Shown here: positions 1 through 29,680 of the stretch, in pieces | How the letters are laid out: every line of letters starts with the position of its first letter | How positions within the stretch are numbered: position 1 is the first letter of the stretch | NCBI GenBank assembly: GCA_002269645.1 | Contig: NIVC01000840.1 | Location: 1-37,871 of the forward strand | Reading direction: 5' to 3' | Source of the DNA: Macrostomum lignano | Lineage: Eukaryota | DNA: 37,871 bases | Made by a program: the position numbers and the translations under genes | The notes under the pieces: generated by a model | Databases searched by the model: none | Seen by the model: the letters and a program-made list of their open reading frames with translations, nothing else | Told to the model about the DNA's origin: nothing

Positions 1-651
1 AGCACCAAGGGGCGCCAGCACGAGTTTTGTCTATGGTCAAAGCAAAGTTCACGCTATGCAGAAAAAGCGATTAAGAAGCCGTCCTCAATCCGGATATTTT
101 ACGCGTCTAAATCCATGGAATTCAACCTTGCGCCGCATGTACTTTAAGCGAGTTAGCGAATCCCCCATTGAGCTGCTGGGGATGCAGTAAAACTAGTTCT
201 CTTAATCCCTAATCCAATCTCTCAATTTATAATAGACACCGTCAGAAGCTGGGCCATTAATGAGTGCCTGAGATCTGAGAGTGGGTTCTAAAGGAAAGAG
301 GATTAATAGCGTGTTATAAAGGTAAGCCAGAATTAATCAGCACCAGAGGCTGCTGCACTCACCGGTTAGCCGACTCCGATGCGGTTGTTATGCAGGCGGC
401 ACCTGCCAATAAAACGGCCACCAGGTGCACGTACTGAATCATTAATTTGAATTGGCAATCCTGGCCCACCTCAGGAGCTGGCTTTTGGCTTTTAACGCTT
501 GAGGTGCAGGTCAGTTTTTATTGAGGCTCGGAGCGCTGGAAAAACGGCATTAGGAAGTTACCAGTTCGTCATATAAAACAGTTCTGGCTTCCCCAAATTG
601 GAACAATTAAATAAAGTACATTTTGAGCCTCATTTTCTGGGGACTAGGGAG

Positions 652-2453: not shown

Positions 2454-4352
2454 CTACAGAGGGGCGCCATCTACAGAGGGGCGCCAGCTACAGAGGGGGC
2501 GCCATCTACAGAGGGGCGCCAGCTACAGAGGGGGCGCCATCTACAGAGGGGCGCCAGCTACAGAGGGGGCGCCATCTACAGAGGGGCGCCAGCTACAGAG
2601 GGGCGCCAGCTACAGAGGGGCGCCAGCTACAGAGGGGCGCCATCTACAGAGGGGCGCCAGCTACAGAGGGGCGCCATCTACAGAGGGGTGCCAGCTACAG
2701 AGGGGCGCCATCTACAGAGGGGCGCCAGCTACAGAGGGGCGCCAGCTACAGAGGGGCGCCAGCTACAGAGGGGCGCCAGCTACAGAGGGGCGCCAGCTAC
2801 AGAGGGGCGCCAGCTACAGAGGGGGCGCCATCTACAGAGGGGGCGCCAGCTACAGAGGGGCGCCAGCTACAGAGGGGCGCCAGCTACAGAGGGGCGCCAG
2901 CTACAGAGGGGCGCCAGCTACAGAGGGGCGCCAGCTACAGAGGGGCGCCAGCTACAGAGGGGCGCCAGCTACAGAGGGGCGCCATCTACAGAGGGGCGCC
3001 AGCTACAGAGGGGCGCCAGCTACAGAGGGGCGCCATCTACAGAGGGGCGCCAGCTACAGAGGGGCGCCAGCTACAGAGGGGCGCCAGCTACAGAGGGGGC
3101 GCCAGCTACAGAGGGGCGCCAGCTACAGAGGGGCGCCAGCTACAGAGGGGGCGCCATCTACAGAGGGGTGCCAGCTACAGAGGGGGCGCCATCTACAGAG
3201 GGGCGCCAGCTACAGAGGGGCGCCAGCTACAGAGGGGGCGCCAGCTACAGAGGGGCGCCAGCTACAGAGGGGCGCCAGCTACAGAGGGCGCCAGCTACAG
3301 AGGGGGCGCCATCTACAGAGGGGCGCCAGCTACAGAGGGGCGCCAGCTACAGAGGGGCGCCAGCTACAGAGGGGCGCCAGCTACAGAGGGGCGCCAGCTA
3401 CAGAGGGGCGCCAGCTACAGAGGGGCGCCAGCTACAGAGGGGCGCCAGCTACAGAGGGGGCGCCATCTACAGAGGGGCGCCAGCTACAGAGGGGCGCCAG
3501 CTACAGAGGGGCGCCATCTACAGAGGGGCGCCAGCTACAGAGGGGCGCCAGCTACAGAGGGGCGCCAGCTACAGAGGGGCGCCAGCTACAGAGGGGCGCC
3601 AGCTACAGAGGGGCGCCAGCTACAGAGGGGCGCCAGCTACAGAGGGGGCGCCATCTACAGAGGGGCGCCAGCTACAGAGGGGGCGCCATCTACGGAAGGG
3701 CGCCAGCTAGAGGGAAAGCTCCAGCTACAGAGGGGGCGCCATCTACAGAGGGGCGCCAGCTACAGAGGGGCGCCAGCTACAGAGGGGCGCCATCTACAGA
3801 GGGGCGCCAGCTACAGAGGGGCGCCATCTACAGATAGGCGCCAGCTACAGAGGGGCGCCAGCTACAGAGGGGCGCCATCTACAGAGGGGCGCCAGCTACA
3901 GAGGGGCGCCATCTACAGAGGGGCGCCAGCTACAGAGGGGCGCCATCTACGGAAGGGCGCCAGCTAGAGGGAAAGCTCCAGCTACAGAGGGGGCGCCATC
4001 TACGGAAGGGCGCCAGCTAGAGGGAAAGCTCCAGCTACAGAGGGGGCGCCATCTACAGAGGGGCGCCAGCTACAGAGGGGGCGCCATCTACAGAGGGGCG
4101 CCAGCTACAGAGGGGGCGCCAGCTACAGAGGGGGCGCCATCTACAGAGGGGCGCCAGCTACAGAGGGGCGCCATCTACAGATAGGCGCCAGCTACAGAGG
4201 GGCGCCAGCTACAGAGGGGCGCCATCTACAGATAGGCGCCAGCTACAGAGGGGCGCCAGCTACAGAGGGGCGCCAGCTACAGAGGGGCGCCAGCTACAGA
4301 GGGGCGCCAGCTACAGAGGGGCGCCAACTACAGAGGGGCGCCAGCTACAGAG
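2454..4352. repeat. 17/18-bp GC-rich minisatellite (ctacagagggg[g]cgcca[g/t]), ~110 copies
   Basis: Directly visible; the unit lacks plus-strand stops, which explains the 447-aa and 515-aa pseudo-ORFs cycling through all three frames. Confidence 0.98.
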
Positions 4353-5982: not shown

Positions 5983-8064
5983 ATGCCGAATAACAGCAAA
6001 GAAACTGCTGATAAACTGGTGAATATTGAAGCAAATTTTGCTTGCTGGCAGCCGGCACTTGTTCTGGCATGCGTTGCTTTCATTTGCTCAACCGCAGTGG
6101 CCTCCTACTCGGTGTCCGTTTACATTAACAATCCGATTTTCGGTAGATCACCAGACGAACCGGTAAGATCTGTCACTTACCTGGGTAATAAATCAGATTT
6201 CTATAAGTGAAAATTTTCATCACAGTGAAAACAATTCATTCTAAACCATCATACTTTCGATAGGTCAGCATGCACTTTGTTTTGGATAAGCAAAAATTGA
6301 AGACTTGTGCGCGTTCGGGACTTCGTGTGAAGTATACCGACTTGCCGTGCATGAGATCGGACACTGAGTATTACACTATTGGTGAGGGGATGGGACTGGC
6401 TGCCCCACTTTTGTCTGGTGTGGATATGGTGGCTGTCTTAGAGGGGCTGTTTTAAGCGGGCTGTGGGACTGTGTTTAAGGGGGGTGCTGTAAAGGGGGGC
6501 TGTTTTAAGGGGGCTGTTTTAATGGGGCTGTTTTAATGGGGCTATTTTAATGGGGCTGTTTTAAAGGGGGCTGTTTTAATGGGGCTGTTTTAATGGGGCT
6601 GTTTTAATGGGTTGCTGTTTTAATGGGGCTCTTTTAATGGGGCTGTTTTAATGGGGGCTGTTTTAATGGGGCTGTTTTAATGGGGGGCTGTTTTAATGGG
6701 GCTGTTTTAAAGGGGGGCTGTTTTAATGGGGCTGTTTTAATGGGGCTGTTTTAATGGGGCTGTTTTAATGGGGGGCTGTTTTAATGGGGCTGTTTTAAAG
6801 GGGGGCTGTTTTAATGGGGCTTTTTTAATGGGGGCTGTTTTAATGGGGCTGTTTTAATGGGGCTGTTTTAATGGGGGCTGTTTTAATGGGGCTGTTTTAA
6901 TGGGGCTGTTTTAATGGGGCTGTTTTAATAGGGCTGTTTTAATGGGGCTGTTTTAATGGGGCTGTTTTAATGGGGTGCTGTTTTAATGGGGCTGTTTTAA
7001 TGGGGCTGTTTTAATGGGGCTGTTTTAATGGGGCTGTTTTAATGGGGCTGTTTTAATGGGGCTGTTTTAATGGGGCTGTTTTAATGGGGCTGTTTTAATG
7101 GGGGCTGTTTTAATGGGGCTGTTTTAATGGGGCTGTTTTAATGGGGCTGTTTTAAAGGGGGGCTGTTTTAATGGGGCTGTTTTAAGGGGATGTTTTAATG
7201 GGGCTGTTTTAAAGGGGGGCTGTTTTAATGGGGCTGTTTTAAGGGATGTTTTAAGGGGGCTGTTTTAAAGGGCGGCTGTTTTAGTGGGACTGTGTTTAAG
7301 GGGGGTGCTGTAAAGGGGGGGCTATTCTAGGAGGCTGTCTTAGAGGGGTTGCTTTAGGGGTGGTGTTTAGGGGGTGGTGTTTTAGGGGGGGGGACTTTCT
7401 TAGGGGGACTCACCATAAAACACGACATCATTAAACGCCAAACAGACGGATGCCTCGGACCCGTAGTCTGCCGAGACGAGTGCCAGTCGGACTCATCGCG
7501 CACAGTCGGCTGCCGTTGCCATGACAATGCCGGAGGTTTTAACTTGACCGGAAATTCGGGCAGCGTCGGATTAAATATGGGAGGTGTTTATCTGATTTAT
7601 GCCCAGGTAAGTGAGTTATCGATTTCTCAGTCAGTGGAATCCTGACCCCAGAGGAACCCCAGTCAGGGGAATCCCAGTCAGGGAAATCCCAGGCAGGGGA
7701 ATCTCAGTCGGGGGAATCCCACTCCGGGGAATTCCAGTTAGGAGAATCCCAGTCAAGAGCATTCCAGTCAGTGGAACGTTAATGTTGAACGTTGAACTTG
7801 GCAAATGATTTATCCCCAAACCAGGTCAGCTTTCGAGATTCCGAGTCCAGCCCAGTTGCCGTGTCGCTGCAGGTGAACGGCAAGCACACTTCGGCCCAGT
7901 GTCATCAGGCGAACTCGATGTCCAACGGCTCATACTGCGTCATCAATAGTCAAAGACGATTCAAAGTAGGCGATCGAGTGGCCGTGCACTCACCTGAGGC
8001 CTTCAGAGTTGTCAACGCAGATAGCGCAGTCACGTTCTGGGGACTGGTGCGCCTGTCTGACTGA
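5983..8064 (+). CDS. TNF-superfamily ligand (EDA/eiger/BAFF-like, EF-disulfide type), type II membrane protein, ~246 aa; join(5983..6162,6264..6381,7404..7606,7825..8064)
   Basis: All introns GT-AG with matching phases (0,1,0): ccg|gtaaga, ttcgatag|gtc, attg|gtgagg, ctttcttag|gg (alternative in-phase acceptor at 7445), cag|gtaagt, aaaccag|gtc. Exon 1 has a hydrophobic signal-anchor (ALVLACVAFICSTAVASYSV). Splicing creates the TNF signature GVYLIYAQ|VSF; C-terminus has KVGDRVAV and TFWGLVRL; strand A PVSMHF; Cys pair in AQC and SYC. Confidence 0.85.
6495..7285. repeat. 14-bp minisatellite (ggggctgttttaat), ~55 copies, inside intron 2 of the TNF ligand
   Basis: Directly visible; lies between donor 6382 and acceptor 7403. 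Confidence 0.97.
7651..7765. repeat. Degenerate 15-bp tandem array (agtcaGGGGAATCCC-like), 8 units, inside intron 3 of the TNF ligand; units match the NF-kB consensus
   Basis: 10-mers start at 7651, 7666, 7681, 7696, 7711, 7726, 7741, 7756; four match GGGRNWYYCC exactly. The repeat is seen; regulatory function is not shown. Confidence 0.8.
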
Positions 8065-8789: not shown

Positions 8790-9261
8790 CTTTAAAATTT
8801 CTATCGTCTCTTCTGTTTCCTTTCTTCTCTCTCGTCCCTCGTCTCTCCTCTCTCCTCTCTCTTCTCTCCTCTCTTCTCTCGTATCTTCCTTCATCTCTCT
8901 TCTCTTTCATCTCTCTTATTTCATCTCTTCCCTATTCTTTTCTCTCTCCACTCCTCTCTCCTTTCTACTTTTCGTTTTCTCTCTGCTCTCCTCTCTCCTC
9001 TCTACTTTTTCGTTTTCTCTCTCCTCTCCTCTCTCCCCCTCTTCTCTCGTCTCTTCCTTCTCCTCTCTATTCTTTTCTCTTATCTCTTAACTCTCTCCTC
9101 TACTCTCTCATCTCTCCTCTCTACTCTTTCCTTTCTCTCTCCTCTCTCCCCTTTTCTCTCGTCTCTTTCCTCACCTCTCTTCTCTCTCGTCTGCTCTTTC
9201 ATTTCTCCTTTCTCTTCCTTTATCTTTTCTCTCTTATCTCTTCTCGTTTCTCTCTGCTCTG

Positions 9262-9337
<76 letters not shown>

Positions 9338-10165
9338 TCTCTCCCATCTCTTTTCTCCTCTCTACTCTCTCCCCTCTTCATTCTCCTATTTCCTCTTCTC
9401 TCTCCCTGTCTCTCCTCTCTCCTCTAGTCTCTGTAATCTCTTCTCTCTTATCTTTCCTCTGTTCTCTCTACTCCCATCTCTCGTCTGTTCATTTGCTCTC
9501 TCATCTGTCATCTTTACTCTCTTATACGTTCTCTCACTTATCTCCTCTGTACTCGTCCCTTTCACCTCTTCTGACTCCTTTTTTCTTTACTCCTCTCTTC
9601 TTTTCTCTTCCCTCTTCTATACTCTCTCTCCTCTATTATCTTCTCTCGTCTCTCTGCACTCTCCTCTCACCTTTTTCATCTCTCATCTTTACTCTCTCAT
9701 CTCTCCTTTCATCTGTCTCATCTCTTTCCTCTCTCCTCCTCTTCCCTTTACTCTCTCATCTCTCCTTTCTCCCCTCTTCTTACACCCCTCTCTTATCACT
9801 ATCTCTTCTCTTCTCACTCCTCTCCCCCCATCTTATCTCCTCTCTTCTCTATCCTTTCTACTCTCTCCTTTCTAATCTCTCCACTCCTCTTGACCCTCTG
9901 TCATCTTCTTTCTGCTCTCTCATCTCTACTCTCTTTTCACTCTTCTCTACTCTCCTCTCATCGATCCTCTGTCTCATCTCTCCCCTCTTCTAACCTTACT
10001 CTTTCCTCTCCCTCCTTTCTCCCCTCTTCTCGCTTCTTCCTCCCTTCTTCTCTGCTCTCTCCTCACCACTTGTCTCTCCTCTTATATTCCATGTTTTCTC
10101 ATATCCCCCTCTCGCCTCTCCTCTCTTCTAATAGTCTATTCCTTCTCCTTTCCACTCTCATCTGG
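8790..10165. repeat. ~1.4-kb CT-rich low-complexity polypyrimidine tract including a pure (CT)n run at ~9268-9330
   Basis: Directly visible; source of the Leu/Ser/Phe-only ORFs. Confidence 0.97.
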
Positions 10166-11249
10166 CCTGAACATAAGCTGGATTCTTTATCTGGCTTCTG
10201 AAGTAAAAATCTACCCATTCCTGCTTGGAAAGCCAGTTTGTGGGACGTAGTAGTACTCTCATTTCTGTTCTCATGCTTTGATCACGTCATCTTTCTTGCC
10301 AATTTGCAGTCCTGAAAGGAATTTGTGTATTTTCAGCTCCACTGCAGTCTGCATCAGTCTAACAACCAAGGAAATACGCATTTCTTAGGAGGACATTTAA
10401 AATTTAAGGTACTTTTAAGAGAAACTTAAAATTTCCATGGTGTGCCTAATTTAGTAGGGTTGTATTGCATTGCATCACCTTTTCATAAATCTTTCGCTTT
10501 CACAAACCATGCCAGATTGCCTTGATTTGCCAATTGCCATCCACTGTTAAACTGCTGCAGAGTTTGCCAATACAGAGGTGAGGGCAGTGGTTAGAATTTC
10601 TCACTAAACTGTTGTGGCTAAACGTAGCCTCCACGGAGGTGCAAAGAAGGATATAAAGAAAGCTATTCCAAAACACTGTACATTTGTTATGTACATTCAG
10701 TCCTATCGCCTGACCCTTGGTCTGGCTCTGGGGGAATGAGTGAGTGAGTGAGTGGCACAAACAACAGAAAAAGCAGACAAACTTCACATGCTTACAGTTT
10801 CTGCTCTGAATGAGTTACAGAGTTGTAACTTTACATTTAGACAGAGAATGAGTCAATGAAGAATTTTGTCAAGATCAAAGTCAATCGCTTCACGTGGAGC
10901 AAACTTATGGCAGCCGAAAGTTAGTCAATTTTTAAACCCCTTTTACACATCTGGGCCCAGATCGGGAAAGAGAGGCAGGCGGACGGAGGTTGGGGTGGCT
11001 GTCTCGCTGAAAAAACAGCCTAACTTTAAAAGTGCACAGCGCCGTTCAAAATTGAGTTTGAGACTTGAAATAGTACACGATTGTGCCAAAATAGTTGAAG
11101 ATTGTCTGTGTCAAATTTGAAGAGAATCGGTAGAAGTGGAGCGGCGCTACGAAGGATTAAGTAAAAAAACGCGCATTTTGAGCAGTTTTTTGCACTTTTA
11201 GGTAGGAAGACTCAAATTTAAGAAATGTAAAAGTAGCCTAAGACATTCT

Positions 11250-13645: not shown

Positions 13646-14262
13646 CGCTACTGTACGGGAGTGTAAAAATTTTAACGCTGCTAGAGGAACTGTCAATTTT
13701 GGCGCAGCATGAAGCGTCAGTTCCGGCGCCATTGAGAGTCGCAACTAAATGGTGCCATCTTAGCTCCGACATTGGCACCATGTCAGTATGTGTTGTCAGT
13801 TATGGCGCTACAGTTTTCATTGAAATTACAGCATTACAGAATGCATTAAAAGAGTAAAACCACAGGCGATCAGCTCTCTCTGTATACCGGCATATGACTG
13901 AGCTCATGTCAATGCACTCGCTACAATCTGGCAAGTCGCAGACAAAGCTAATGAAATTCTCGTAACACTGTCCAATCAGCGAAATTTGATAGAAAAGGGG
14001 AACTTTGGCTGTGTGCGCAGGGAACAAGGTTCTAAATAATAAGCACAGGTTAAAGGTGCGTACTTTCCGCTGGATAGAGGGTTGGGGTTGAGGCGAGAAG
14101 GTAAGAAAATGAGTGGGCGTTGAGCATGCCACTAAAGCAGTTGAAATAAAAGTTAAAAGCACAGAAAAGCAGACTATAATATGGAACCAACGCAAACGCT
14201 TAAAGAGCAGCTATAGTTTTTTAAAAAGTAAACTAAGAAACGAGTCTTACTTGAGCAGTTGC

Positions 14263-17200
14263 ATGACAACTAGCGGAATGTCTAATCCTATTTCATCCCA
14301 AAGGTCCTCTGTAGAAGACGATTCGCCAAATCAGCAGGAGCTTTCAACAGTCCCTAAAACTCCAGAGAAGACTGAGGAAGACCCAAGCGAACAAGCTCCA
14401 TTAAACGGGAAGCCTCGGAATCAGGAGCAGCAAGAGAACATTAAACTGGCAACAAGCCAACAATGCAACTGTAAAAGTATCTTCTATATGATTTGCGCAC
14501 TGCTTGGGATTGCGCTTTTAGCTGCCATCCTCTACAAGCTCTGTCAAGAAACTGACGACAAGATTTCTACAACACCTGCGCCAAACTTTGTCAGCGCCAT
14601 GAGCCGAATAAGTCCAGCAGCAGCAGGCATCACCACAGCTGCGACTGGATCGAAGATTTCCTCTACTCGTAGCACAACTGTAAGACTCGTTATACTTTTT
14701 AACTACTTTAAGTAACAATAACAATAGAAAAGCGTGTATAATGCGCATTTCAGCGGCCAACAATCTACTTCTCGATGGTCCTTGATCCTAAACGAATTGG
14801 CGTTTGCTCGGACAATAAAGAAACCAACTGCAGGCATGGCAAAAGACCAACTTTTATACTGCCGGGCGCCAATGGCCGTGAGTAATGGTTTCTGTGAGTA
14901 TGGCTCAAGCTTGGTAGCATAGGTTTTTTGTCTCCTTTTCGCCCTTTTTCTCAAAGGTCTACTCTAACTATCCATAACTAATCTTCGTTCCTGAAAAGTC
15001 CAAAAAAATCCCCGTGAAACGAAAAAATCGCACTTTGAAAATGATGAAAAATAACAAATATCAATAAATTAATCGCTTGCATATAAGTGATATAACAAAG
15101 GTTTTTAGCGTTTCTTGAGTCAGTTTTTTAAAAAGAGATTTTGGGTTTTTTGTTATTTTTCAAACAGTGTAGTTATAAATACTATTTTAGCTTTGAAAGT
15201 TTGTACTTTATTTTACTTGCTTAAAAATGTGATTTTTCGACATCCTCCATTTTCATACGCTCGTATTTGGTATGTGCTGGTGGAAAAGTCATGGGATTTT
15301 TAACGATTTTTCTCTAGCAGTAATACATAAATTATAGCGGACTTTTGAACAACGTAGAGCGACCGAAAGTGCATTACCCTTAGTATTTTTATTACACCTG
15401 CCCCAATGGGTAGATGCGCAACCGACAGCTCAGCCGCAGTTATTGCGCGGCGCATCTGAAGGCTGCGTACGGCTGTTCAGTCCAAGGACTGGGGGGTCGC
15501 CACACACCCTCAATTACCTCAGCTAATGCTGGCACCCATTTTACAGCTGGGTGAACTGAAGCAATGCAGAGTGAAGTGTCTTTTGCTCAACTTGCTCAAT
15601 TAGGAAAAATTGTTCCGAGTGAGTCTTTAGTCTTGCTCTAACTACTAGGCAACAACCCTCACTCTGGACCCCGTTTTGAGTTTCAGCATACCAATCGACT
15701 ACGCCAAACTGTTATTGTACTTTCAGATGCACAGAACCTGGGACCATTCACTTGCAAAGTAAACCATCAATGCGAGCAAGTGCAGACAATCGGCAATGAG
15801 TTTGTTTTTAAACGCCCCGGAAGAGTCAAGATCAGTGCCCAGGTGAGACGCTGTACACCTAAGTATGTTCCAAGCATATTATTACAACCAAATGACAACC
15901 AAAAATGACAACCAACAAATATAAATATAAACCTTTGAATGAAAATTCGTTATAGAATAAACAGAACCTGTATTAGGCCACTGCTAGCTACAGATGTCAC
16001 TCGCAAAGATGCGTTCATCAACTCTTTTTTAGTAGCTAAAGTTGCATTTCTGTCTTTCTGCAAGCGAAATAAAATAATTTACATTTTACGTTTTTGAAGC
16101 TTCAAAAAACAATAAGAAATTTGAGGTAGAAAATTTCATGAAAACTTGATAACGGCCTAAACCATTGCGTCTGCATAGCGAGCAAGAGAGAAAAGGGGTG
16201 GTGCCCCCAGCCCCCAGCCAGGCCGATAAATAGTTTGGCTTTCCTCTTGCCCGCTTGTGTCTGACTGTGACGACTCTCCTTACTGCTCTCTCATTGGTTG
16301 AGCTAGATTGGGCCTGCCCCCTAGGCTGGGTTTCGTCCGGTCTGACTTTGGACCCTCTCTCTCTCTTTACTGCTCTCTCATTGGCTGAGCTAGATTGGGC
16401 CTGCCCCCCTAGGCTGGGTTTCGTCTGGTCTGACTTTGACCCTAGCTCTCTCTCCTTACTACTCTCTCATTGGCTGAGCTAGATTGGGCCTGCCCCCCTA
16501 TGCTGGGTTTCGTCCGGTCTGACTTTGTCCCTCTCTCTTTACTGCTCTCTTATTGGTTGAGCTACATGTAGATTGGGCCTGCTCCCCCCTAGGCTGAGTT
16601 CTGTCTGTCGTACGTTCACTTGTGTACATCGAGTTCAATTCTTGTTGGTCCATCTTTAACCCCATATGCTCCCTGAGGCCGCAAACCCCGAGGAAGGAAA
16701 ATAAATTTTAACTGCCATATTAGATTTAAGTGACACTGCGCAGACTAACTACTGAAAAAAGAGTAGACGCTCAACTTTCTTCCAACTTTAATCGCAAGTG
16801 ACACACCCTGTGTTATTCGAGTACCTGTGCTCACTGCAAAACAATTACACCCGAAAGCAGAAAGAAACAAAATACTGATTTACCGATGAAAACCCGCCAA
16901 GACTAGACTCAATCAATGAAAGATGTCTATCAACTCACCAGTGATAAACTGACCAATTATTCCATGTAAGTAGTATAGCGCGCCAGGATTGCTAACAAAC
17001 AACTCATTTCTTGTATTTACTCCCTTCGAGACACACACTTACTCATTTTGAGCTCTGCAGTACGACTTTAACGAAGGGAGTACGAGAAATGAGAGGGGCT
17101 TCGACAAAGAAGTTCTAGCGCTTGTTGTATATACGACTCCATGGACAACCAAAGTAGAATTCTTAATTCTTAGTCTACACTCGAAAATCATGCAAATTAC

Positions 17201-17531
17201 GATAGGAAGTTTTTGAATGGTAACCCTCCGACCCTCATTTAAACTCATTAATTGCCACCCACGAACTATACAGGTGTCATTGGAAAGCGCCAACACAGGT
17301 CAGCAAGTCACCCTGGACTTGAGGCTCAATAGAAGCAGAATTGAGAAAAGAGTGTTCGATAAACTTCACCCAGGCAGCAAAGTTACTCTGCCGATTCACT
17401 CTGAGCGTATAAAATTGTCAGCAAACAGCACCATCGCTCTGAGATTGACTCTTGAATCTGGATTACCCGTGGAACTGCTCTACGCAATTGCTGACACAGA
17501 CGTCAGCTTCGAACTGTTACTGGACAACTGA
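14263..17531 (+). CDS. Divergent TNF-like type II membrane protein, ~326 aa; join(14263..14679,14728..14877,15687..15842,17274..17531)
   Basis: All introns GT-AG phase 0: act|gtaaga, acaatag|aaa, gcc|gtgagt, gagtttcag|cat, cag|gtgaga, ctatacag|gtg. Exon 1: acidic cytoplasmic region, TM (IFYMICALLGIALLAAILY), Ser/Thr stalk. Strand-A-like YNAHF; GRVKISAQ|VSL has the same intron position as GVYLIYAQ|VSF in the first gene; LGPFTC vs LGPVVC; IHSERIKLSANSTIAL vs INSQRRFKVGDRVAV. A likely 5'UTR intron lies at 14101..14258. Confidence 0.7.
15395..15655 (-). mobile_element. tRNA-derived CORE-type (MIR-related) SINE remnant in intron 2 of the second TNF-like gene
   Basis: cccattttacagctgggtgaactgaagcaatgcagagtgaagtgtcttttgctcaa (15535-15590) closely resembles the reverse complement of the MIR/CORE domain as recalled (cccattttacagatgaggaaactgaggcacagagaggttaagtaacttgcccaa); A-box-like head (minus strand gcctagtagttagagc) at ~15635-15650; B box not evident. 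Confidence 0.65.
16270..16600. repeat. ~83-89-bp tandem repeat, ~4 copies, in intron 3 of the second TNF-like gene
   Basis: cattgg(t/c)tgagctagattgggcctgcccc recurs at ~16292, 16379, 16468, 16551. Confidence 0.9.
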
Positions 17532-18396: not shown

Positions 18397-19085
18397 TGGC
18401 TGGCATAGCAACTGAGGATCTGGGAGGCTGGCATAGCAACTGAGGATCTGGGAGGCTGGCCCAGAAACTGAGGATCTGGGAGGCTGGCCCAGAAACTGAG
18501 GATCTGGGAGGCTGGCCCAGCAACTGAGGATCTGGGAGGCTGGCCCAGAAACTGAGGATCTGGGAGGCTGGCCCAGAAACTGAGGATCTGGGAGGCTGGC
18601 CCAGAAACTGAGGATCTGGGAAGCTGGAAAAGCAACTGAGGATCTGGGAGGCTGGCCCAGCAACTGAGGATCTGGGAAGCTGGCCCAGAAACTGAGGATC
18701 TGGGAGGCTGGTCCAGCAACTGAGGATCTGGGAAGCTGGAAAAGCAACTGAGGATCTGGGAGGCTGGCCCAGCAACTGAGGATCTGGGAAGCTGGTCCAG
18801 CAACTGAGGATCTGGGAGGCTGGAAAAGCAACTGAGGATCTGGGAGGCTGGCCCAGCAACTGAGGATCTGGGACTCTGGCCCAGCAACTGAGGGTCTGGG
18901 AAGCTGGTCCAGCAACTGAGGATCTGGGAAGCTGGAAAAGCAACTGAGGATCTGGGAGGCTGGCCCAGCAACTGAGGATCTGGGACTCTGGCCCAGCAAC
19001 TGAGGGTCTGGGAAGCTGGTCCAGCAACTGAGGATCTGGGACTGGGAGGCTGGCAAAGCAACTGAGGGTCTGGAAGGCTGGCCCA
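18397..19085. repeat. 28-bp minisatellite (gcaactgaggatctgggaggctggccca), ~24 copies
   Basis: Period 28 (aggctgg at 18481 and 18509); explains three overlapping minus-strand repeat ORFs. Confidence 0.97.
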
Positions 19086-19159
19086 GTGATCGGGGAGAAC
19101 GCCAGTTTCCCTATCTTAGGATAAATAATTAACAGTAATAGAAAACATTAGTTTGTTTT

Positions 19160-19265: not shown

Positions 19266-20036
19266 TCAGTCATCCGCCGCTGACGGTTTCGGCAGGGTGC
19301 TGTGGTGCCGATGCGACTTCAGGCCGCTTAGAGATGTCGATAAAGCTTCCTCATTGTCATCGACATCGTCGGCTGCTGCTCCGGCGGTGGCGGCGGCGCC
19401 GGTTGAAGCTCCGGCGCTCTCAGAGACTGCCCGACTTGGCTGGCGACTGTGCCGAATCTGCTGGTGGGGCTGCTGTTGCCTGCCAGCTGCTGCAGAGAAC
19501 TTGCCAGCAGAAGCATCCGGTGCAGTGCTGATGCTGGTACGCCGTGACAGCAGCAGAGAATGCAAGCCCAGCGCCAGGAATATGAACAACAGTACACCAT
19601 CCACGGCGTACACTACAGCAATCTGTGTCAGATAAGACGGCATGTTGTACACCTGCAGAGTAGTGCTAGCGTTGTACCGCCGATCAGGCACTGAGCAGAC
19701 ATAATCTCCTGAGTCCTCAACAGCCAGGTGAATAGCCGACATGGTGCCATTCACTGCACTGATATTAGCATGGGACCAGGCCCAATTATCAATCTGGCTG
19801 CCATTGGGAAAGTACCAGGCCAGCTCAGCAACGGAGTAATTAGTGGCCAGTTCCGGTGACAGATGACAGCTAACTGTGGTGTTGCTACCCACTAATAGGG
19901 ACTGCTGGTACGGTTCGGCAGCCAGAGGCGGAGTCTCTTCATCTGGCTCGCTGGCAACTGTCTGCTGAGGCGTTGAAAATAGCAGCAACAGGAAAAGCAG
20001 GAACACTGAATTGCTTTGGAGCATCGTTGTGGACAT
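19266..20036 (-). CDS. Single-Ig-domain (I-set-like) type I membrane protein, 256 aa, Asp in the TM helix, low-complexity Tyr-free tail
   Basis: Signal peptide (VFLLFLLLLFSTPQQTVA); Ig core VSC...LAWYFPNG...EDSGDYVC; TM IAVVYAVDGVLLFIFLALGL; six N-glycosylation sequons; uninterrupted ORF. Confidence 0.92.
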   Translation of the reverse strand: MSTTMLQSNSVFLLFLLLLFSTPQQTVASEPDEETPPLAAEPYQQSLLVGSNTTVSCHLSPELATNYSVAELAWYFPNGSQIDNWAWSHANISAVNGTMSAIHLAVEDSGDYVCSVPDRRYNASTTLQVYNMPSYLTQIAVVYAVDGVLLFIFLALGLHSLLLSRRTSISTAPDASAGKFSAAAGRQQQPHQQIRHSRQPSRAVSESAGASTGAAATAGAAADDVDDNEEALSTSLSGLKSHRHHSTLPKPSAADD

Positions 20037-20082
20037 GAATGAAAAAAGTTAAAGGTACTTTCAAAATGTCTAATGACACAAT

Positions 20083-21133
20083 CTACCATTGTCTAAATCT
20101 AATAGCATGATACACAATCTATCATTGTGCAAACCCAATAGCACGATACACAATCTATCATTGTGCAAACCAAATAGCATGATACACAATCTATCATTGT
20201 GCAAACCCAATAGCACGATACACAATCTATCATTGTGCAAACCAAATAGCATGATACACAAACTACCATTGTGCAAACCAAATAGCATGATACACAATCT
20301 ATCATTGTGCAAACCCAATAGCACGATACACAATCTATCATTGTGCAAACCAAATAGCATGATACACAAACTACCATTGTGCAAACCAAATAGCATGATA
20401 CACAAACTACCATTGTGCAAACCAAATAGCATGATACACAATCTACCATTGTGCAAACCCAATAGCATGATACATAATCTACCATTGGCTAAACCCAATA
20501 GCATGATACACAATCTACCATTGTCTAAACCTAATAGCATGATACATAATCTACCATTGTGCAAACCAAATAGCATGATACACAATCTACCATTGTCTAA
20601 ATTCAATAGCATGATTCACAATCTACCATTGTGCAAACCCAATAGCATGATACAAAATCTACCATTGTGCAAACCCAATAGCATGATACACAATCTACCA
20701 TTGTCTAAACCCAATAGCATGATACACAATCTACTATTGGCAAAACCCAATAGCATGATACACAATCTACCATTGTCTAAACCTAATAGCATGATACATA
20801 ATCTACCATTGTGCAAACCAAATAGCATGATACACAATCTACCATTGTGCAAACCAAATAGCATGATACACAATCTATCATTGTGCAAACCCAATAGCAT
20901 GATACATAATCTACCATTGTGCAAATTAAATAGCATGATACACAATCTACCATTGTGCAAACCCAATAGCATGATACATAATCTACCATTGGCTAAACTC
21001 AATAGCATGATACACAATCTACCATTGTACAAACCCAATAGCATGATACATAATCTACCATTGGCTAAACCCAATAGCATGATACACAATCTACCATTGT
21101 GCAAACCCAATAGCACGATACAATCTACCATTG
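20083..21133. repeat. 36-bp minisatellite (aatagcatgatacacaatctaccattgtgcaaaccc), ~29 copies, immediately 5' of the first Ig-TM gene (probably in a 5'UTR intron)
   Basis: Directly visible; explains the NSMIHNLPLCKP repeat ORF. Candidate minus-strand donor (gtaagc) at ~21242 and acceptor at ~20058 flank it. Confidence 0.97.
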
Positions 21134-21859
21134 CCTCGTTCGGGCCATAGACAGAAAAAAGCAAGTATTTGGCTTTATTATTTCTTCCACTAACGATTAA
21201 ATTGCCTACTTTTAGGCCCAATTATAATATTAGCATGCTTACATTTTTACCCACTCGAACAGGAATTTAAGTAAAACTAGGCTCTTTTAATCTATCAATT
21301 TTACGCTTAGCGAGGGTTGGCGAGAGTGTCCTCAATTAATGATAAGCGCCTGCCTCGGCTATTATAGAAATTTTAAGCCGAACAGATGCGACTGAAAGAC
21401 AGTCCTTTTGGAGGAAAGATGAATGAAACAATCTAAACGCTTTTTATTTTTTACAAAGTAGAACCCTTCAACACTTTCTCTCTCTCGTCCAAACGCTTTG
21501 CTACTGAAGGCTGCACAAAAATATATTTGAGGATAGTTGGTAATTTCCTATTCAAATAAATACATCTACAAAGTACAAACTTAAACATGAAACTATATAT
21601 TCGTGGGGACACACAGAAATTTTATACGATGAGAAGTTTCTGTAGGCTGCTGAACAACAAGCCTGTCATCATTAAATATAAAATATTAATTTTGTGCTAG
21701 CTATTAGATTTCATAGACGAAAGGGTATACTGAAGAGGTTTGAGGAGATATTGAAGATATGAGGTTATAGAGTGTGAGAAAAGGTCATTAGAGAGTGAGG
21801 ATAGATAAAGGCGTGTGAGAGATCAGGAGAGAAAATATCAGTGTCGTCACAGCTTAGTG

Positions 21860-22640
21860 GGTGTGAGGAGAGATCAGATGAGTGTGAGGAGAGATCAGGG
21901 GAGTGTGAGGAGGGATCAGGAAGTGTGAGAAGAGATCAATGCGTGTGAGGAGAGATCAGGGAGAGTGAGGAGAGATCAGGGAGGGTGGGGAGAGATCAGG
22001 GAGAGTGAGGAGAGATCAGGGAGAGTGAGAAGAGATCAGGGAGGGTGGGGAGAGATCAGGGAGAGTGAGAAGAGATCAGGGAGGGTGGGGAGAGATCAGG
22101 GAGGGTGAGGAGAGATCAGGGAGAGTGAGGAGAGATCAGGGAGAGTGAGGAGAGATCGGGGAGAGTGAGAAGAGATCAGGGAGGGTGGGGAGAGATCAGG
22201 GAGAGTGAGGAGAGATCAGGGAGTGTGAGGAGAGATCAGGAGGGTGGGGAGAGATCAGGAAGAGTGAGGAGAGATCAGGGAGGGTGGGGAGAGATCAGGG
22301 AGAGTGAGGAGAGATCAGGAGGGTGGGGAGAGATCAGGGAGAGTGAGGAGAGATCAGGGAGAGTGAGGAGAGATCGGGGAGAGTGAGAAGAGATCAGGGA
22401 GGGTGGGGAGAGATCAGGGAGAGTGAGGAGAGATCAGGGAGGGTGGGGAGAGATCAGGGAGGGTGAGGAGAGATCAGGGAGAGTGAGGAGAGATCACGGA
22501 GGGTGGGGAGAGATCAGGGAGGGTGAGGAGAGATCAGGGAGGGTGGGGAGAGATCAGGGAGTGTGAGGAGAGATCAGGGAATGTGAGGAGAGATCAGGGA
22601 GTGTGAGGAGAGATCAATGAGGGTGAGGAGAGATCAGGGT
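21860..22640. repeat. Purine-rich ~20-bp minisatellite (gagagtgaggagagatcagg / gagggtggggagagatcagg), ~38 copies
   Basis: Directly visible, two interspersed variants. Confidence 0.96.
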
Positions 22641-23049
22641 GAGATAGATAGGTGTGTGAAAGCCGAGCTGAGATACGCTTTAATCAGAGTTATTAGGGTG
22701 GCAAATGAAGCAAATAAAGTGAGTGCCTGTAAAGTAAATTGTCGTCATGAGAGCTCTTACGACAAAAATTTCCACATCCTTTATACGCTCGTAATCGCAT
22801 TAATTCTACTTTTTATCCAAAAAGAAATCGCTTAATTGGGGTCCACTTAGCTCGAAAATCTTCAAACATGATGCTTTCATCTCAGAAAATGAACCACTTT
22901 TAGGACAGAATTATTACCAAATAGATTGGTATTAGAGGGGCCGATTTAGAAAAATCTTCAAACATAATACTTTCACTTGCTACTTAATTAATCTATCAAT
23001 GAACTACTTTCAGGACAGAATTTTCATTGTCGTATGATAAAAACTCACT

Positions 23050-23850
23050 TAGACTCTAAAGTGAGTCATGCCCAAAATCCGTTAGTGTCTATATGGCATG
23101 CGAGGAGTTTAGGAAAAGCATAGTCGAAGCATGAAGCCCGACAAGACGCATTCTCAATTTTACAAGGCTACTCGCCTAAAACTCGGTGACTCAGCCACCA
23201 AAGTCCACCAAGATCTGGTAGATGCTTGGGGCGATGCTTTTCCATCCTTGAGAACCATACAGCGCTGGATGAAAGACGTCAATGACGGGACGCGGGAAGT
23301 GCTCGGCGATGGTGACCGACCTGGCCGGTCAAGGAGCTCAAGGACAGATGAGCTGGCGATGAAGGTTAAGGAGATGGTCTGCGAGAATCCCCACCTCTCG
23401 TCCCGTGATCTAGTTGACCTCTGGCGAACCGGAAACCTGTAACGTACTCTGAGCAAGATCAGCCTGCAAAAACGGACAATGCTCGACCGCATGTTGCAGG
23501 ACTCTTTAGGGATTTCCCCTGCAAGAGCGCTCTGTCACCGCGATTTGGAAGAGCCCTACAGTCCCGATCTGAACCTGTGTGACCGATTTCTGTTCCTCTA
23601 GCTAAAGAACGCACTCCGCGGCATGACCTTCAACAACTGTCAAGAGGTTGAAGAGGCCTCATTGCAGGTGTTGCGGAACATCTCTGAAAGTGCCCTCCGA
23701 GACCAGGTGGATGTGCCCCTGGACCACTACCAGCGCGTGATTGCAGTCAATGGACACTACGTTACTGATTAGAGTTAAAATGTTTCACGTTTTTACCTGT
23801 TTGCTTGCCTAGAGGTACTAACGACAAGACTTTTGTTCCACCTGGAGTAC
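23050..23850 (+). mobile_element. Degraded, internally deleted mariner (DD34D-type) element
   Basis: 23131-23442 encodes a mariner N-terminal HTH (FPSLRTIQRWMK...DRPGRSR); downstream frames give DNARPHVA and PYSPDLNLCD motifs and a C-terminus ending VNGHYVTD* (23772), with frameshifts and an in-frame stop; first catalytic Asp region is missing. TIRs only weakly recognisable. Confidence 0.88.
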
Positions 23851-25847
23851 GTATTGAAAATGATTTCGAAGTGGCGAATAAAAGTATAGTGATGGGAAGT
23901 TTTAAAGGCAAGATAAGATTAATCTTAATTTAGGCAAGATAAGTTATTTTTTTGGGAATGATACTAATAGATTTACTGGGATTATGGCGACAGTTGAAAA
24001 ATCCTGTCCAAAAAGCCCCTCTCATGACCACTACTCCAGTATCTCTAGTAATATGTCAATAAAATTGAAGAAATGAAGCCAGCAGTTCATCCTCAAAGGT
24101 ACCTACAGACTAATACAAAGAGTAAACGCTTGATTAAAGACTGCTGTCGTTCGCTTTCTCCTAGACCTTGTCGGAGCTTTGGATGCCAAGGTTTTAAATT
24201 CCTTTCAACCCGCGTTGATTACACAAAACTGCATTTGAGAAGACAACTAACCAAATTTGAACAGGCGTGTCTTTTAGCGCGCAGCAGTGTTGTCCAAAAA
24301 TAGATTTCCAAGAAACCCGGACAGGCGTCATAGAAAGGCAAAGACAAAAGCAAAAGCGAAAAATGTCGTGAAAGCGACGCGAGCTACAATCAACGATCGA
24401 GTTCGAACTAGAACACAGAGACGTCAATGGATTTCCCAGATACCCACGCCTTTCATTTTTTTTCTACAAAAGAAAGAGGCGTTCCAGGGCTGGCTTGAAT
24501 TGCTAGGCGCGGCGAGTCGATAATTTCTTTTCAAACTACCCGCATTTCAGTTGCCAGCCACGCCTACGCGCTGTTTTTGCTAGGGCGACATGGACAGATA
24601 AGGCAAAGGCATCTCAAAGCTCGCCTGCAGTAGCAGCTGCAATCAGGAAATGGGAGACTCCCCCAGGTAACGCAGGCCTTGCAACGCAGCGTAGGAAGGA
24701 AACGACAAGACAAGGAGCTAGCTTGGCTGGGCCAGTGCAGGGGGACGGACTGGCGACACAAAATCCGCCCCTCCCTTCCTCAGGATGTGCTGAGCAGCAG
24801 CATCATTATCATAGCTATCTGCTTCTTTTATTCCCAGCTGCAGAAGCCAACTGAGCAGAGGGCAAACCATCAATCAGCAGAGCCCACCGCCATGCCTAAT
24901 ATATCCACGAACTGAAAGGAGGAAACTTATTTTTTCGAATTATCTTTCTCTTTCTTTTCTGACTAACTACATTACATATCTATATAGATAGCGTCACGTT
25001 CAACTTGGGCCTTCATCTATCATCGCGTACCTAATGCCTATTATCCTGTGTCACGCGTCACCAAGTTGGAGAAAGAAAGCAAAAAAGTAGACAAACGTGG
25101 CATTGCCGAAGTCAGCCAAGCACAAAATAATGCTCATTTAATATGCTTTGTTAATAAAAAACATAACACACCAAACGCGTCGAGCTGGCCTAGAAAAAAA
25201 CTGAAAAAAATAGTTTGCAAAAGCAGCAAAAAACGCTGGCTATCACTAAAGAAAAACGGAAAATGGAATCATAGTTAACAGCATATATGGGGAAACGAGA
25301 CGTGGGCGAAAAACAGTCCGAGTTTTCCTCAAATCCCAGCTGACTCAAGGCTGGCAGCAAATATTAGTAGCAAGAAGATAAAACCGGATTACCCGCTTCC
25401 GAAACGTCACTTTTTCTTATAGGTCTGATCCAGACTGACTGACTGACTTTGGGTGATCGATTACTGAATTTTTTTCAACCTATATGCGCATATGAAACAG
25501 CGATAGTCCAGGATGGGATTTCAGATCGAACTTTTTATCTACTTGTAGGCTAAATTAGAAAAAAGTAAAACTTGTGTGTCCATCACCAAAATAATTAATG
25601 AAGTAGCACTTAAATAAGGCACAGAGCAATAAGCTGATACGCAACAATTCACCTAAGAAAGTGCAGCACCAAAATTTTTATAAAATCTATTAATATATAG
25701 CAAATTTTACACTACCACGTGACCAGAAATCAAACGAGCATTCTGAACTTAGACGTGGTTTGAAAGCGGTGACCTCAAGGAACTGAACAAAACCAATGCT
25801 AGAATCTATCTATGATCCTAAAAACTTACAAGTTAAACTGGCTCAAG

Positions 25848-26726
25848 GAACTGGTTCTGTTCCTTGGGTCATGGCTTCCATAACTGGTTCTGTTCCTTGG
25901 GTCATGGCTTCCAAAACCGGTTCTGTTTCTTGGGTCATGGCTTCCATAACTGGTTCTGTTCTTTGGGTCATGGCTTCCAAAACTGGTTCTGTTCTTTGAG
26001 TCATGGCTTCCATAACTGGTTCTGTTCTTTGGGTCATGGCTTCCATAACTGGTTCTGTTCCTTGGGTCATGGCTTCCAAAACTGGTTCTGTTCTTTGAGC
26101 CATGGCTTCCATAACTGGTTCTGATCCTTGGGTCATGGCTTCCAAAACTGGTTCTGTTCTTTGGGTCATGGCTTCCAAAACTGGTTCTGTTCTTTGGGTC
26201 ATGGCTTCCATAACTGGTTCTGTTCCTTGGGTCATGGATTCCAAAACCGGTTCTGTTCTTTGGGTCATGGCTTCCAAAACTGGTTCTGTTCTTTAAGTCA
26301 TGGCTTCCATAACTGGTTCTGTTCTTTGGGTCATGGCTTCCAAAACTGGTTCTGTTCTTTGAGTCATGGCTTCCAAAACTGGTTCTGTTCTTTGAGTCAT
26401 CATGCCTTCCAAAACTGGTTCTGTTCCTTGAGTCATCATGCCTTCCAAACCGGTTCTGTTCTTTGAGTCATCATATGCCTTCCAAAACTGGTTCTGTTCC
26501 TTGAGTCATCATGGCTTCCAAAACTGGTTCTGTTTTTTGAGTCATCATGGCTTCCAAAACTGGTTCTGTTCTTTGAGTCATCATGGCTTCCAAAACTGGT
26601 TCTGTTCTTTGAGTCATCATGGCTTTCAAAACTGGTTCTGTTCTTTGAGTCATCATGGCTTTCAAAACTGGTTCTGTTATTTGAGTCATGGCTTGCAAAA
26701 CCGGTTTTGTTCTTTGAGTCATGGCT
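25848..26726. repeat. 33-bp minisatellite (aactggttctgttctttgggtcatggcttccaa) changing to 36-bp units by CAT insertion, ~26 copies
   Basis: Directly visible; explains the EAMTQRTEPVL-type ORFs. Confidence 0.97.
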
Positions 26727-26886
26727 TCCGAAACGCGTCAAGATTCACGAACTCTCGCAGAAAAGCACTAGCCTTAATTAGACCAAAACAGCACATTGAA
26801 GCGACCCGGTATTTTTATGCAGAAAAATTGGATTAGAATCAAGTAAAAAGCTAATGAAAGCTGAACCAACCAACCAGAGACAGAGT

Positions 26887-26892
26887 TTTATT
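26887..26892 (-). promoter_or_regulatory. Candidate polyadenylation signal (AATAAA) of the second Ig-TM gene
   Basis: tttatt on the plus strand ~90 nt past the stop codon. Confidence 0.45.
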
Positions 26893-26979
26893 TAACAGCA
26901 GAACTGAATCATGGTAAAAAATTAACCATTGATTGCACTAGAAAAAAGCAGAATAAATTCCAATAGAAAAAACTTGCAA

Positions 26980-27489
26980 TCAAACTGCGCGACTAGATTG
27001 TCTAAAAGAGCCCAACAGAGACATAACGCATAACACGCCAGCCAAAATCGTTAGAGCACCATCAATAGAGTACACAATCGTTAAAACTGACGTATAAGAC
27101 GGCATTTTATAAATGACAACATTAACCGAAGCGGTCATGTTACACGAATTCAGACGGCACTGATAGTAACCACTGTCACCTTCCGTAGCCTTTAAACAGT
27201 TTAATTTACCATCGTTTGATTGAAACCGGCCTCTCAAAGACAAGCCAGTAATCATAGTGCCATTAGGCGAGTACCATTCCAACGAGCTACTATTAAACTT
27301 GCTGACGCAATCGCCCACAGCAACAGGCTTTGGCAAACGACAAGAGATTGTGAAGCTGCGACCAATTTCGGCTGAGGTTTGATTGAGCGATAAAATTAAA
27401 TAACTGGCAGCATGAACTGTCTGCTGGCCGAATACTAATATCGACAGAATTAGTGCACTCGCAATCGTTTTGTAAGCTGTGTAAGTCAT
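26980..27489 (-). CDS. Single-Ig-domain type I membrane protein, 169 aa, paralogue of 19266-20036, Asp in the TM helix, ~7-aa tail
   Basis: Signal peptide (IASALILSILVFGQQTVHA); Ig core ISC...LEWYSPNG...GDSGYYQC; TM VLTIVYSIDGALTILAGVLCVMSLL; four sequons; strong minus-strand acceptor (tcttttttcag at ~27524-27534) shortly upstream of the ATG indicates a 5'UTR intron or trans-splice site. Confidence 0.92.
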   Translation of the reverse strand: MTYTAYKTIASALILSILVFGQQTVHAASYLILSLNQTSAEIGRSFTISCRLPKPVAVGDCVSKFNSSSLEWYSPNGTMITGLSLRGRFQSNDGKLNCLKATEGDSGYYQCRLNSCNMTASVNVVIYKMPSYTSVLTIVYSIDGALTILAGVLCVMSLLGSFRQSSRAV

Positions 27490-29347: not shown

Positions 29348-29680
29348 TTAGTCCAATCCCTTCAGCAGCGAGCCGATGTCAAGATTGTTGATGTCGTGGT
29401 GACGATCCATGGCCTGACCGGCTGGGCGGTAGCCAAGGCGACCCTGCTGCTGTCGCAGCTCCCGCTCTCGCTCCTGACGCTGCATGGACTCCATGAACTG
29501 CTCCCACATAGTCTCAAACTGCTCATCGTTCATCACGGGTCCGGAGGAGCTGCCGCTAGCGCTGCTGCTGGCGCCGCTGCGATGACCGTTGCTGCCAGAT
29601 ACAACGGCGGTAGCTGGCAGAGCAGTAACAGCAGCAGCCAGGGAAATAGCAACCAACAGATAGAAGGTAAAACACTTCAT
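29348..29680 (-). CDS. Small secreted protein / peptide precursor, 110 aa, function unknown
   Basis: Clear signal peptide MKCFTFYLLVAISLAAAVTA|LP; Ser/Gly linker, charged helical segment, amphipathic C-terminus; GC-rich coding-like composition against an AT-rich background. Confidence 0.8.
   Translation of the reverse strand: MKCFTFYLLVAISLAAAVTALPATAVVSGSNGHRSGASSSASGSSSGPVMNDEQFETMWEQFMESMQRQERERELRQQQGRLGYRPAGQAMDRHHDINNLDIGSLLKGLD

Follow-up and report, generated by a model that had tools for sequence, protein, structure and literature searches.

Two neighbouring genes of the flatworm Macrostomum lignano, here called A and B, each encode a protein with one immunoglobulin (Ig) domain and one transmembrane (TM) helix, and the helix carries a string, Y-x-x-D-G-x-L, reminiscent of the signalling chains CD3-zeta and FcR-gamma. 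Do such proteins assemble with partners through the membrane, and does the resemblance to the immune receptor chains reflect kinship? Both genes are located on the minus strand, B upstream of A, in contig NIVC01000840.1 of assembly GCA_002269645.1 (37,871 nucleotides, positions 1 to 37,871 of the forward strand; the whole stretch is called the window below). Sequence comparison places A and B, as divergent members, in an uncharacterised and unnamed family in which one face of the TM helix is conserved as a polar stripe that could mediate assembly; the likeness to CD3-zeta is best explained by convergence. M. lignano is a free-living, neopolyploid flatworm whose assembly is rich in near-identical duplicated blocks (genome paper; assembly Mlig_3_7, NIVC00000000). 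The A protein is encoded on three contigs of GCA_002269645.1, including NIVC01000840.1, and is present in NCBI nr and UniRef (P0001), with its start placed there at M5. The two genes are organized as follows (ORF, open reading frame; AF2, AlphaFold2; pLDDT, predicted local distance difference test).

19266-20036, minus strand: gene A, intronless coding sequence including the stop, 256 amino acids, from the ORF list; signal peptide, one Ig domain, TM helix and a disordered acidic tail of 93 residues.
19953-20036, minus strand: signal peptide of A, residues 1-28, ending QQTVA; hydrophobic N-terminus, model helix 3-20.
19647-19925, minus strand: Ig domain of A, residues 38-130, with Cys57-Cys114, Trp74 and six N-x-S/T sites; beta sandwich with pLDDT >90 in the AF2 model.
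19548-19652, minus strand: juxtamembrane and TM block of A, residues 129-163, VYNMPSYLTQIAVVYAVDGVLLFIFLALGLHSLLL; family signature columns, model helix 135-171.
19599-19601, minus strand: GAT codon of Asp146 of A, which falls in the Asn column of the family by column counts.
19284-19313, minus strand: C-terminal HRHHSTLPKP of A, residues 242-251, preceded by an acidic stretch; common to A2, the A-type gene of a second pair.
26980-27489, minus strand: gene B, intronless ORF including the stop, 169 amino acids, from the ORF list; signal peptide, one Ig domain, TM helix and a tail of 9 residues.
27409-27489, minus strand: signal peptide of B, residues 1-27, ending QQTVHA; model helix 3-20.
27109-27399, minus strand: Ig domain of B, residues 31-127, with Cys50-Cys111, Trp72 and extra cysteines 61, 98 and 116; AF2 model.
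27010-27114, minus strand: juxtamembrane and TM block of B, residues 126-160, IYKMPSYTSVLTIVYSIDGALTILAGVLCVMSLLG; model helix 132-168.
27061-27063, minus strand: GAT codon of Asp143 of B, at or just inside the outer membrane boundary according to the hydrophobic windows.
20037-26979, no strand: spacer between B and A, 6.9 kb, with three minisatellites (36 bp x29, 20 bp x39 and 33 bp x26) and a mariner-like transposase remnant; regarded as genomic context without a function of its own.

At the sequence level, A and B prove to be true paralogues, each composed of one Ig domain and one membrane pass: BLASTP aligns them with 41/130 identical residues (32%, E=1e-17), and both contain MPSY...VYxxDGxL. 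A first-pass annotation of the window had described them as a paralogue pair with diverged Ig domains and a preserved juxtamembrane/TM block. Indeed, identity is 27% in the Ig domain (23/84) versus 48% in the block VYNMPSYLTQIAVVYAVDGVL / IYKMPSYTSVLTIVYSIDGAL (10/21), a contrast that is not significant in the pair alone (Fisher p=0.11). The conservation of the block becomes convincing because of the family alignment described below, in which Y130, M132, P133, Y135, N/D146, L149, F153 and C156 stand out as the best conserved columns apart from the Ig core. The common QQTV(H)A ending of the signal peptides, pointed out in the same annotation, was found as described, with QQTV lying ahead of the predicted cleavage site and encoded by the same 12 nucleotides in both genes. 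The AF2 models, computed with the family alignment, show an Ig fold and one long helix in each protein (mean pLDDT 91.6 for B) and a disordered tail in A. In both, the linker between the Ig domain and the helix consists of only 4 residues, x-M-P-S (N-M-P-S in A, K-M-P-S in B). Pfam matches of A (Ig_3, ig) and B are limited to Ig models and all lie below threshold. No cysteine occurs in A beyond C114, and the only one in the corresponding part of B is C154, deep in the TM segment. Neither cytoplasmic tail contains a tyrosine; therefore, an immunoreceptor tyrosine-based activation motif (ITAM) is impossible, in agreement with the earlier description of the tails.

A separate observation concerns codon usage in the two genes. 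Where A and B have identical residues, their codons match in 11/11 cases within the QQTV, MPSY, VY and DG patches (window 19590-19660 and 19953-19970 versus 27050-27115 and 27409-27425), versus 13/36 elsewhere; B2, the B-type gene of the second pair, uses different codons at these patches (CCC AGC, GGC). Short tracts of gene conversion between the two tandem genes could explain the match, as could chance.

A profile composed only of A(1-172) and B was searched exhaustively with HMMER against 1.84 billion cluster representatives and retrieved about 46 proteins or clusters of 145-270 amino acids whose match covers everything from signal peptide to TM segment, with E-values from 2e-31 to 4e-8. 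This match runs end to end, up to profile position ~172. Many giant multi-Ig proteins were also retrieved, matched in their Ig part only. The possibility that larger matches reaching the TM positions are mis-merged tandem arrays was rejected; these are multi-Ig proteins resembling CEACAM, hemicentin or butyrophilin, and they do not contain the motif. Word-indexed searches, run with A, B or the 48-sequence alignment as query, returned just A itself, two already-known members and unrelated CEACAMs. The family matches are representatives of 50% clusters, and names, looked up in the 90% clusters of 20 representatives, were found for M. lignano proteins only; the family may well be present in annotated genomes, and its absence from them is not to be inferred from this look-up. 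The canonical members originate from SRA-derived contigs and metagenome assemblies. Their short contigs are genomic in appearance, with acceptor-like sites upstream of the ATG and no spliced leader seen. In two long environmental loci the family gene is intronless and single, with no tandem partner within 10 kb; no synteny with the window and no Rfam or tRNA markers were found in these two loci.

The family consensus reads ...NGTLxI....DsGxYxC...(N.T)..L.VY.MP[SDT]YF.EGMI(I/V)..IN[AG].L...F..C.......RR. In the alignment, C57, W74 and C114 are invariant (A numbering is used for the family throughout), and no Pfam model covers any part of the family except the Ig domain. Matches to Pfam Hemotin, CD47 V-set, Sp38 and CD3 Ig_4/Ig_5 were dismissed as noise (1-4/48 members, E 1e-4 or weaker). 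Column counts over 48 family sequences revealed strong conservation from the end of the Ig domain into the membrane. Directly after the last Ig strand comes the linker V-Y-x-M-P-[SDT]-Y (VYNMPSY in A, IYKMPSY in B), in which Y130 and M132 are each present in 44/48, P133 in 47/48 and Y135 in all 48/48 sequences. Further along, the counts are 32/48 for F136, 38/48 for E138, 31/48 for G139, 39/48 for I145, 41/48 for N146 (replaced by D in 4, G in 2 and S in 1), 47/48 for L149, 42/48 for F153 and 41/48 for C156. The information content of positions 133-163 is periodic, with a maximum at 100-105 degrees per residue, and therefore one face of an alpha-helix is conserved, formed by positions 135, 138/139, 142, 145/146, 149, 153 and 156. 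Such a stripe has not been described before, and the broader idea of assembly within the membrane gains support from it. A and B retain the stripe in part: L149 is kept, A also has F153, and position 146 is polar, but as Asp. Both are devoid of E138, G139 and M140, and the Cys of position 156 is missing from A and displaced by one residue in B.

The family alignment changes the meaning of the Asp and of the string around it. Both had been put forward in the first-pass annotation as the conserved element of the pair, and this did not hold. With Asn in 41/48 sequences, and also in A2, the Asp is not conserved across relatives. The Tyr of YxxDGxL is found in 3/48 sequences and replaced by W in A2, aromatic residues at this column being confined to the M. 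lignano genes, while most members have L, V or I. The residue after N/D146 is A or G in the family (Gly in 16/48). Since the Asp occupies an Asn column and the Tyr is mostly aliphatic elsewhere, YxxDGxL is a local variant of [LVI]-x-I-N-[AG]-x-L and not an ancestral motif; what extends across the family is the Asn-containing stripe. The four sequences with Asp146 are A, B, B2 and the unrelated P0045, and all of them lack Glu138, the boundary residue that is nearly invariant elsewhere, an absence seen in only 6/44 of the others (Fisher p=0.001), 38/44 of which have this Glu. Either E138 or D146 is thus present in 42/48 family sequences. This pattern hints that an acidic group is wanted on that face of the helix and that, in M. 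lignano, it has moved two turns deeper into the membrane.

Whether the Asp lies inside the bilayer, as the first-pass annotation supposed, was assessed with the Hessa hydrophobicity scale, and the answer differs between the two proteins. The lowest-energy TM windows of A (139-157 and 139-163) include D146, at a marginal cost of about +0.7 to +1.4 kcal/mol, and burial of this residue is likely. In B, D143 lies at the boundary of the best 19-residue window (144-162) and is included in a 25-residue one, so that its burial is uncertain. Marginal hydrophobicity is typical of TM helices in need of a partner.

A second pair of such genes is present in M. lignano on NIVC01001726, where B2 (P0005, 170 amino acids, Mlig032533.g1) and A2 (P0027, 270 amino acids, Mlig013986.g1) are adjacent on the same strand. 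B2 lies 1.7 kb upstream of A2, so that the B-to-A order of the window is repeated. Identity is 39% between B and B2 and 27% between A and A2. B2 carries MPSY...IYSIDGGL, and A2 carries RTSLY...LVWLLNGAL, with Asn and without MPSY. Type-specific features are shared between the pairs. Both A and A2 have long acidic, disordered tails, whose sole alignable part is HRHHSTLPKP (about 10760-10790 of locus L005 in A2); as a speculation, it could be a short linear motif, recognised by a basophilic kinase or of the 14-3-3-like type R-x-x-S/T-x-P. The B-type proteins have three ectodomain cysteines beyond the Ig pair (61, 98 and 116 in B; 57, 90 and 108 in B2), an odd number, and therefore one of them is possibly free for an intermolecular disulfide. 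Judging from strand positions in the model of B, C61 of the long BC loop and C116 of the FG loop could pair, leaving C98 free. The shared order and the type-specific features of both pairs indicate that the tandem B/A split predates an old duplication of the whole pair. In full texts and in the supplements of the flatworm-specific gene paper, no expression data on A2 or B2 were found by locus tag. Next to this pair, 1.7 kb downstream of A2, lies a full-length retrotransposon of the LINE (long interspersed nuclear element) type (L005 12562-17303, minus strand), with ORF1 and a 1272-residue ORF2 containing endonuclease, reverse transcriptase and RNase H.

How could proteins of this kind work? 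A family member is a small type-I membrane protein whose single I-set Ig domain sits nearly on the membrane, followed by the x-M-P-S linker, one TM helix and a short basic stop-transfer sequence. The conserved face of the helix (Y135, E138/G139, I142, N146 or the Asp of A and B, L149, F153 and C156, spaced by 3-4 residues) would act as a polar surface for helix-helix packing, where Asn or Asp, together with the boundary Glu of most members, could make hydrogen or ionic bonds between helices. The protein would then belong to a membrane complex, as part of a homo- or hetero-oligomer or as the accessory chain of a multi-pass protein, and its Ig domain, kept close to the membrane by a rigid MP.YF linker, would bind something extracellular. 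In M. lignano, tandem duplication of an ancestral gene produced a nearly tail-less B-type with three extra cysteines and an A-type with a long acidic tail, and a heteromer of the tail-less and the tailed chain is a possible refinement. TM Asn, Asp, Gln and Glu are reported to drive helix association in the model-peptide work of Choma and Zhou and their colleagues in 2000 and of Gratkowski and colleagues in 2001. A contact function of the stripe is suggested by this behaviour of Asn and Asp and by analogy with basigin-like proteins, and we favour it over the other readings, with chances that the stripe mediates assembly that appear to us evenly balanced. The annotated proposal of assembly through the membrane is therefore retained in part: the TM conservation has the helical periodicity of a contact face, but a kinship with CD3-zeta and FcR-gamma is unsupported.

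Known single-pass Ig proteins offer several comparisons. The best functional analogy for the whole family is the group of basigin, embigin and neuroplastin, obligatory accessory subunits of multi-pass transporters and pumps, in which an Ig ectodomain is likewise combined with an unusually conserved TM helix bearing a charged residue. These proteins, however, have 2-3 Ig domains, a Glu in mid-membrane and a different TM motif. Membership in the basigin family was rejected, given the single Ig domain of A and B and the fact that the TM profile of the family finds no basigin chain in the PDB. Sodium-channel beta subunits and the MPZ family, which are channel accessory or adhesion subunits, are likewise small type-I proteins, combining a single Ig domain and one TM helix with a short tail, but their Ig domain is of the V-set, they lack a polar TM stripe, and the match to Nav beta-2 covers a hydrophobic stretch plus the basic stop-transfer. 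The ectodomain most resembles the Ig domains of NGL/LRRC4 and AMIGO and NCAM Ig1, both in sequence (LRRC4 Ig, E=2e-4 in a phmmer search with full-length A, which reached FcRI-alpha via Ig domains only) and in structure (Foldseek with the A model: NCAM Ig1, NGL-3 and AMIGO-1 Ig as best matches), whereas these proteins have LRR or multiple Ig/FN3 domains and an unrelated TM segment. Foldseek alignments covering Ig domain and helix, to 7dce_B (XKR8-basigin) and 7xq8_B (BCR, the B-cell receptor), are generic, with a TM-score of about 0.3-0.5 for 7xq8_B.

The resemblance that first drew attention to the locus would mean most if A and B were homologous or functionally equivalent to CD3-zeta, FcR-gamma and DAP12, or to CD3-gamma/delta/epsilon, with an A/B dimer whose paired TM Asp recruits a receptor bearing a basic residue in its TM segment, in the manner of the three-helix assemblies of TCR-CD3, the T-cell receptor complex. 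We consider this extremely improbable. In its favour, Y-x-x-D-G-x-L occurs in A, B and B2 some 6-8 residues deep in the helix, and CD247 and FCER1G have the same string, with G or A after the Asp, at a similar depth, in a TM segment that is likewise marginally hydrophobic; the combination of one Ig domain with a single TM helix that contains a polar or acidic residue also recalls CD3-gamma/delta/epsilon and CD79a/b, chains that work only within a multi-chain complex. Yet full-length A reaches FcR-gamma at only E=1.2, and a phmmer search of the 44-46-residue TM segments of A and B against all PDB chains, a set including the TCR-CD3, FcRI and BCR complexes, returned nothing at E<=10. With the family TM profile, hmmsearch found no CD3-zeta, FcR-gamma, DAP12, CD3, CD79 or basigin chain in the PDB at E<=10, the matches obtained (SERINC3, Nav beta-2 with E=0.32 and the EpoR TM) being all generic hydrophobic ones. 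The ancestral state of the family, Asn with an aliphatic residue at -3, indicates that the string arose within the M. lignano lineage, where A2 has W..NG, whereas the TM Asp of the zeta and gamma chains is conserved. The latter chains have almost no ectodomain, a Cys at the start of the TM segment for the disulfide-linked dimer, and ITAMs, while A and B have an Ig ectodomain of ~100 residues, no Cys beside the TM start and no tail Tyr. Characteristic of CD3-gamma/delta/epsilon are ITAMs and a CxxC(xE) motif in the stalk next to the membrane. The stalk of A and B has no such motif, no significant sequence match to these chains was found, the Ig domain resembles the I-set domains of NCAM and NGL and not those of CD3, and the CD3-type models Ig_4 and Ig_5, matched by neither A nor B, were each hit by 1/48 members at chance level (E about 0.003-0.005). 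The likeness to CD3-zeta is thus best explained as convergence over a 7-residue string, as the first-pass annotation had allowed. No candidate for a basic-TM partner was seen in the window, the TM-containing ORF at 14113-14715 having no basic residue inside its TM segment. A related view, in which the two ancient B-to-A pairs would be heterodimeric receptors whose TM Asp (or Asp/Asn) recruits a third chain with a basic TM residue, would make them an independent flatworm invention of the CD3/DAP12 type, derived from the wider Asn-stripe family; the B-type would provide the tail-less chain with an odd, possibly disulfide-forming Cys and the A-type the tailed chain bearing HRHHSTLPKP. This scenario seems to us a long shot.

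Assembly through the polar stripe has to be weighed against two further explanations. The conserved face of the TM helix could instead serve lipid contact, sorting or retention, or intramembrane proteolysis, so that the juxtamembrane/TM block would be a handle for endoplasmic reticulum quality control, a raft or lipid contact or a cleavage site, and the proteins ordinary Ig molecules of adhesion or recognition. Polar TM residues do serve as retention and degradation signals as well, Cys156 of the family, in the inner-leaflet half, could be a lipidation site, and the Ig domain belongs to the I-set, the type of neural adhesion proteins. On the other hand, the conservation extends as a full-length, heptad-like stripe from Y135 to C156 and is not a local site, and the near-invariant MP.YF.EG linker holds the Ig domain in a set position on the helix, as would be expected more of a rigid complex than of a sorting tag. 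We regard this explanation as unlikely. The other one concerns whether both genes of the pair are functional. Transcripts derived from RNA-seq were the sole input for annotating the NIVC assembly in GenBank (genome paper). A, A2 and B2 are all present in it, and A is therefore transcribed; B was called as a gene in none of the three assembly copies and is missing from the protein collection, even though an ORF of 169 amino acids would pass the coding filter. A and its flanks show 0 differences over 901 bp in the three copies. In contrast, B of the window differs from the other two copies by 6 coding changes, five non-synonymous (Y30H, I32V, T138A, L150V and A151T) and one synonymous, and this divergence of 1.2% is like the 1.4-1.6% of the unique, non-coding DNA beside it. 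Moreover, the B ORF is intact in the window and in L001, but the third copy (L003, NIVC01000307.1, about 2520-2530) has a 1-bp deletion in the TM-coding part, CTCTAACG to CTCT-ACG, which may be a real frameshift or a long-read indel or assembly error. Small as these numbers are, the pattern fits relaxed constraint on B. It is possible, although we find it somewhat doubtful, that only A works here and that B is an unexpressed or decaying duplicate, in which case the pair would have no joint function and B would merely have inherited the motif; for A itself, this is compatible with assembly through the stripe. Two of the three copies of B are intact, six substitutions give no statistical power, and expression could be limited to a few cells or one life stage. 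B also keeps every invariant or near-invariant residue of the family (C50, W72, C111, Y127, M129, P130, Y132 and L146) and the three B-type cysteines found in B2, and its 39% identity to B2 implies selection on B for most of its history.

Several of these observations count against assembly through the stripe or restrict it. Its support is indirect, derived from conservation and analogy. The absence of transcript support for B and of any sign of purifying selection between its copies weakens the case for an A/B heteromer at this locus. E138, G139, M140 and, in part, F153 and C156 have been lost from the M. lignano sequences, and the ancestral partner may have been abandoned. The mutual exclusion of E138 and D146 perhaps represents about two independent events only.

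The surroundings of the two genes contain repeats, with the following arrays.

18398-19086, 20076-21133, 21863-22643 and 25849-26734: minisatellites around the genes.
2454-4352: tandem repeat, 17-bp x110 (GC 0.64).
6496-7318: tandem repeat, 14-bp x56.
8807-9954: TC-rich (TCTCTCC)n tract of ~1.1 kb.

The 36-bp x29 array starts 40 bp upstream of the ATG of A, a 28-bp x24 array lies 180 bp downstream of its stop, and the 33-bp x26 array lies 250 bp downstream of the stop of B. Minisatellite copy numbers vary among the three assembly copies. The (TCTCTCC)n tract has an extreme GC and AT skew, and tandem repeats make up ~1/4 of the contig. At 23131-23772 (plus strand), broken ORFs with matches to HTH_32 and HTH_48 (Mos1-type) just below the Pfam thresholds mark a degraded mariner-like transposase. 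A B-to-A operon was considered and rejected, the spacer consisting of 6.9 kb of satellites and transposon remnant. Two other annotated genes are present in the window: a multi-exon gene at 14113-17531 (plus strand) encoding 343 amino acids, with a Ser-rich region and one TM segment, IFYMICALLGIALLAAILY, in exon 1, and a gene for a small secreted Ser/Gly-rich protein at 29348-29680 (minus strand). Neither of these two proteins has a Pfam match or a basic TM residue.

If the stripe is a docking face, these proteins would form a family, so far undescribed, of small Ig subunits with an accessory or receptor role. Their TM helix is better conserved than their ectodomain, as in basigin and neuroplastin, whose discovery explained the surface delivery of transporters and pumps. 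The finding has no bearing on the origin of the vertebrate antigen-receptor signalling chains. Within the family, the switch from Asn to Asp together with the loss of the boundary Glu would represent a natural experiment on the rewiring of polar contacts between TM helices, and since M. lignano is tractable by transgenesis, the partner of these proteins could be found directly.

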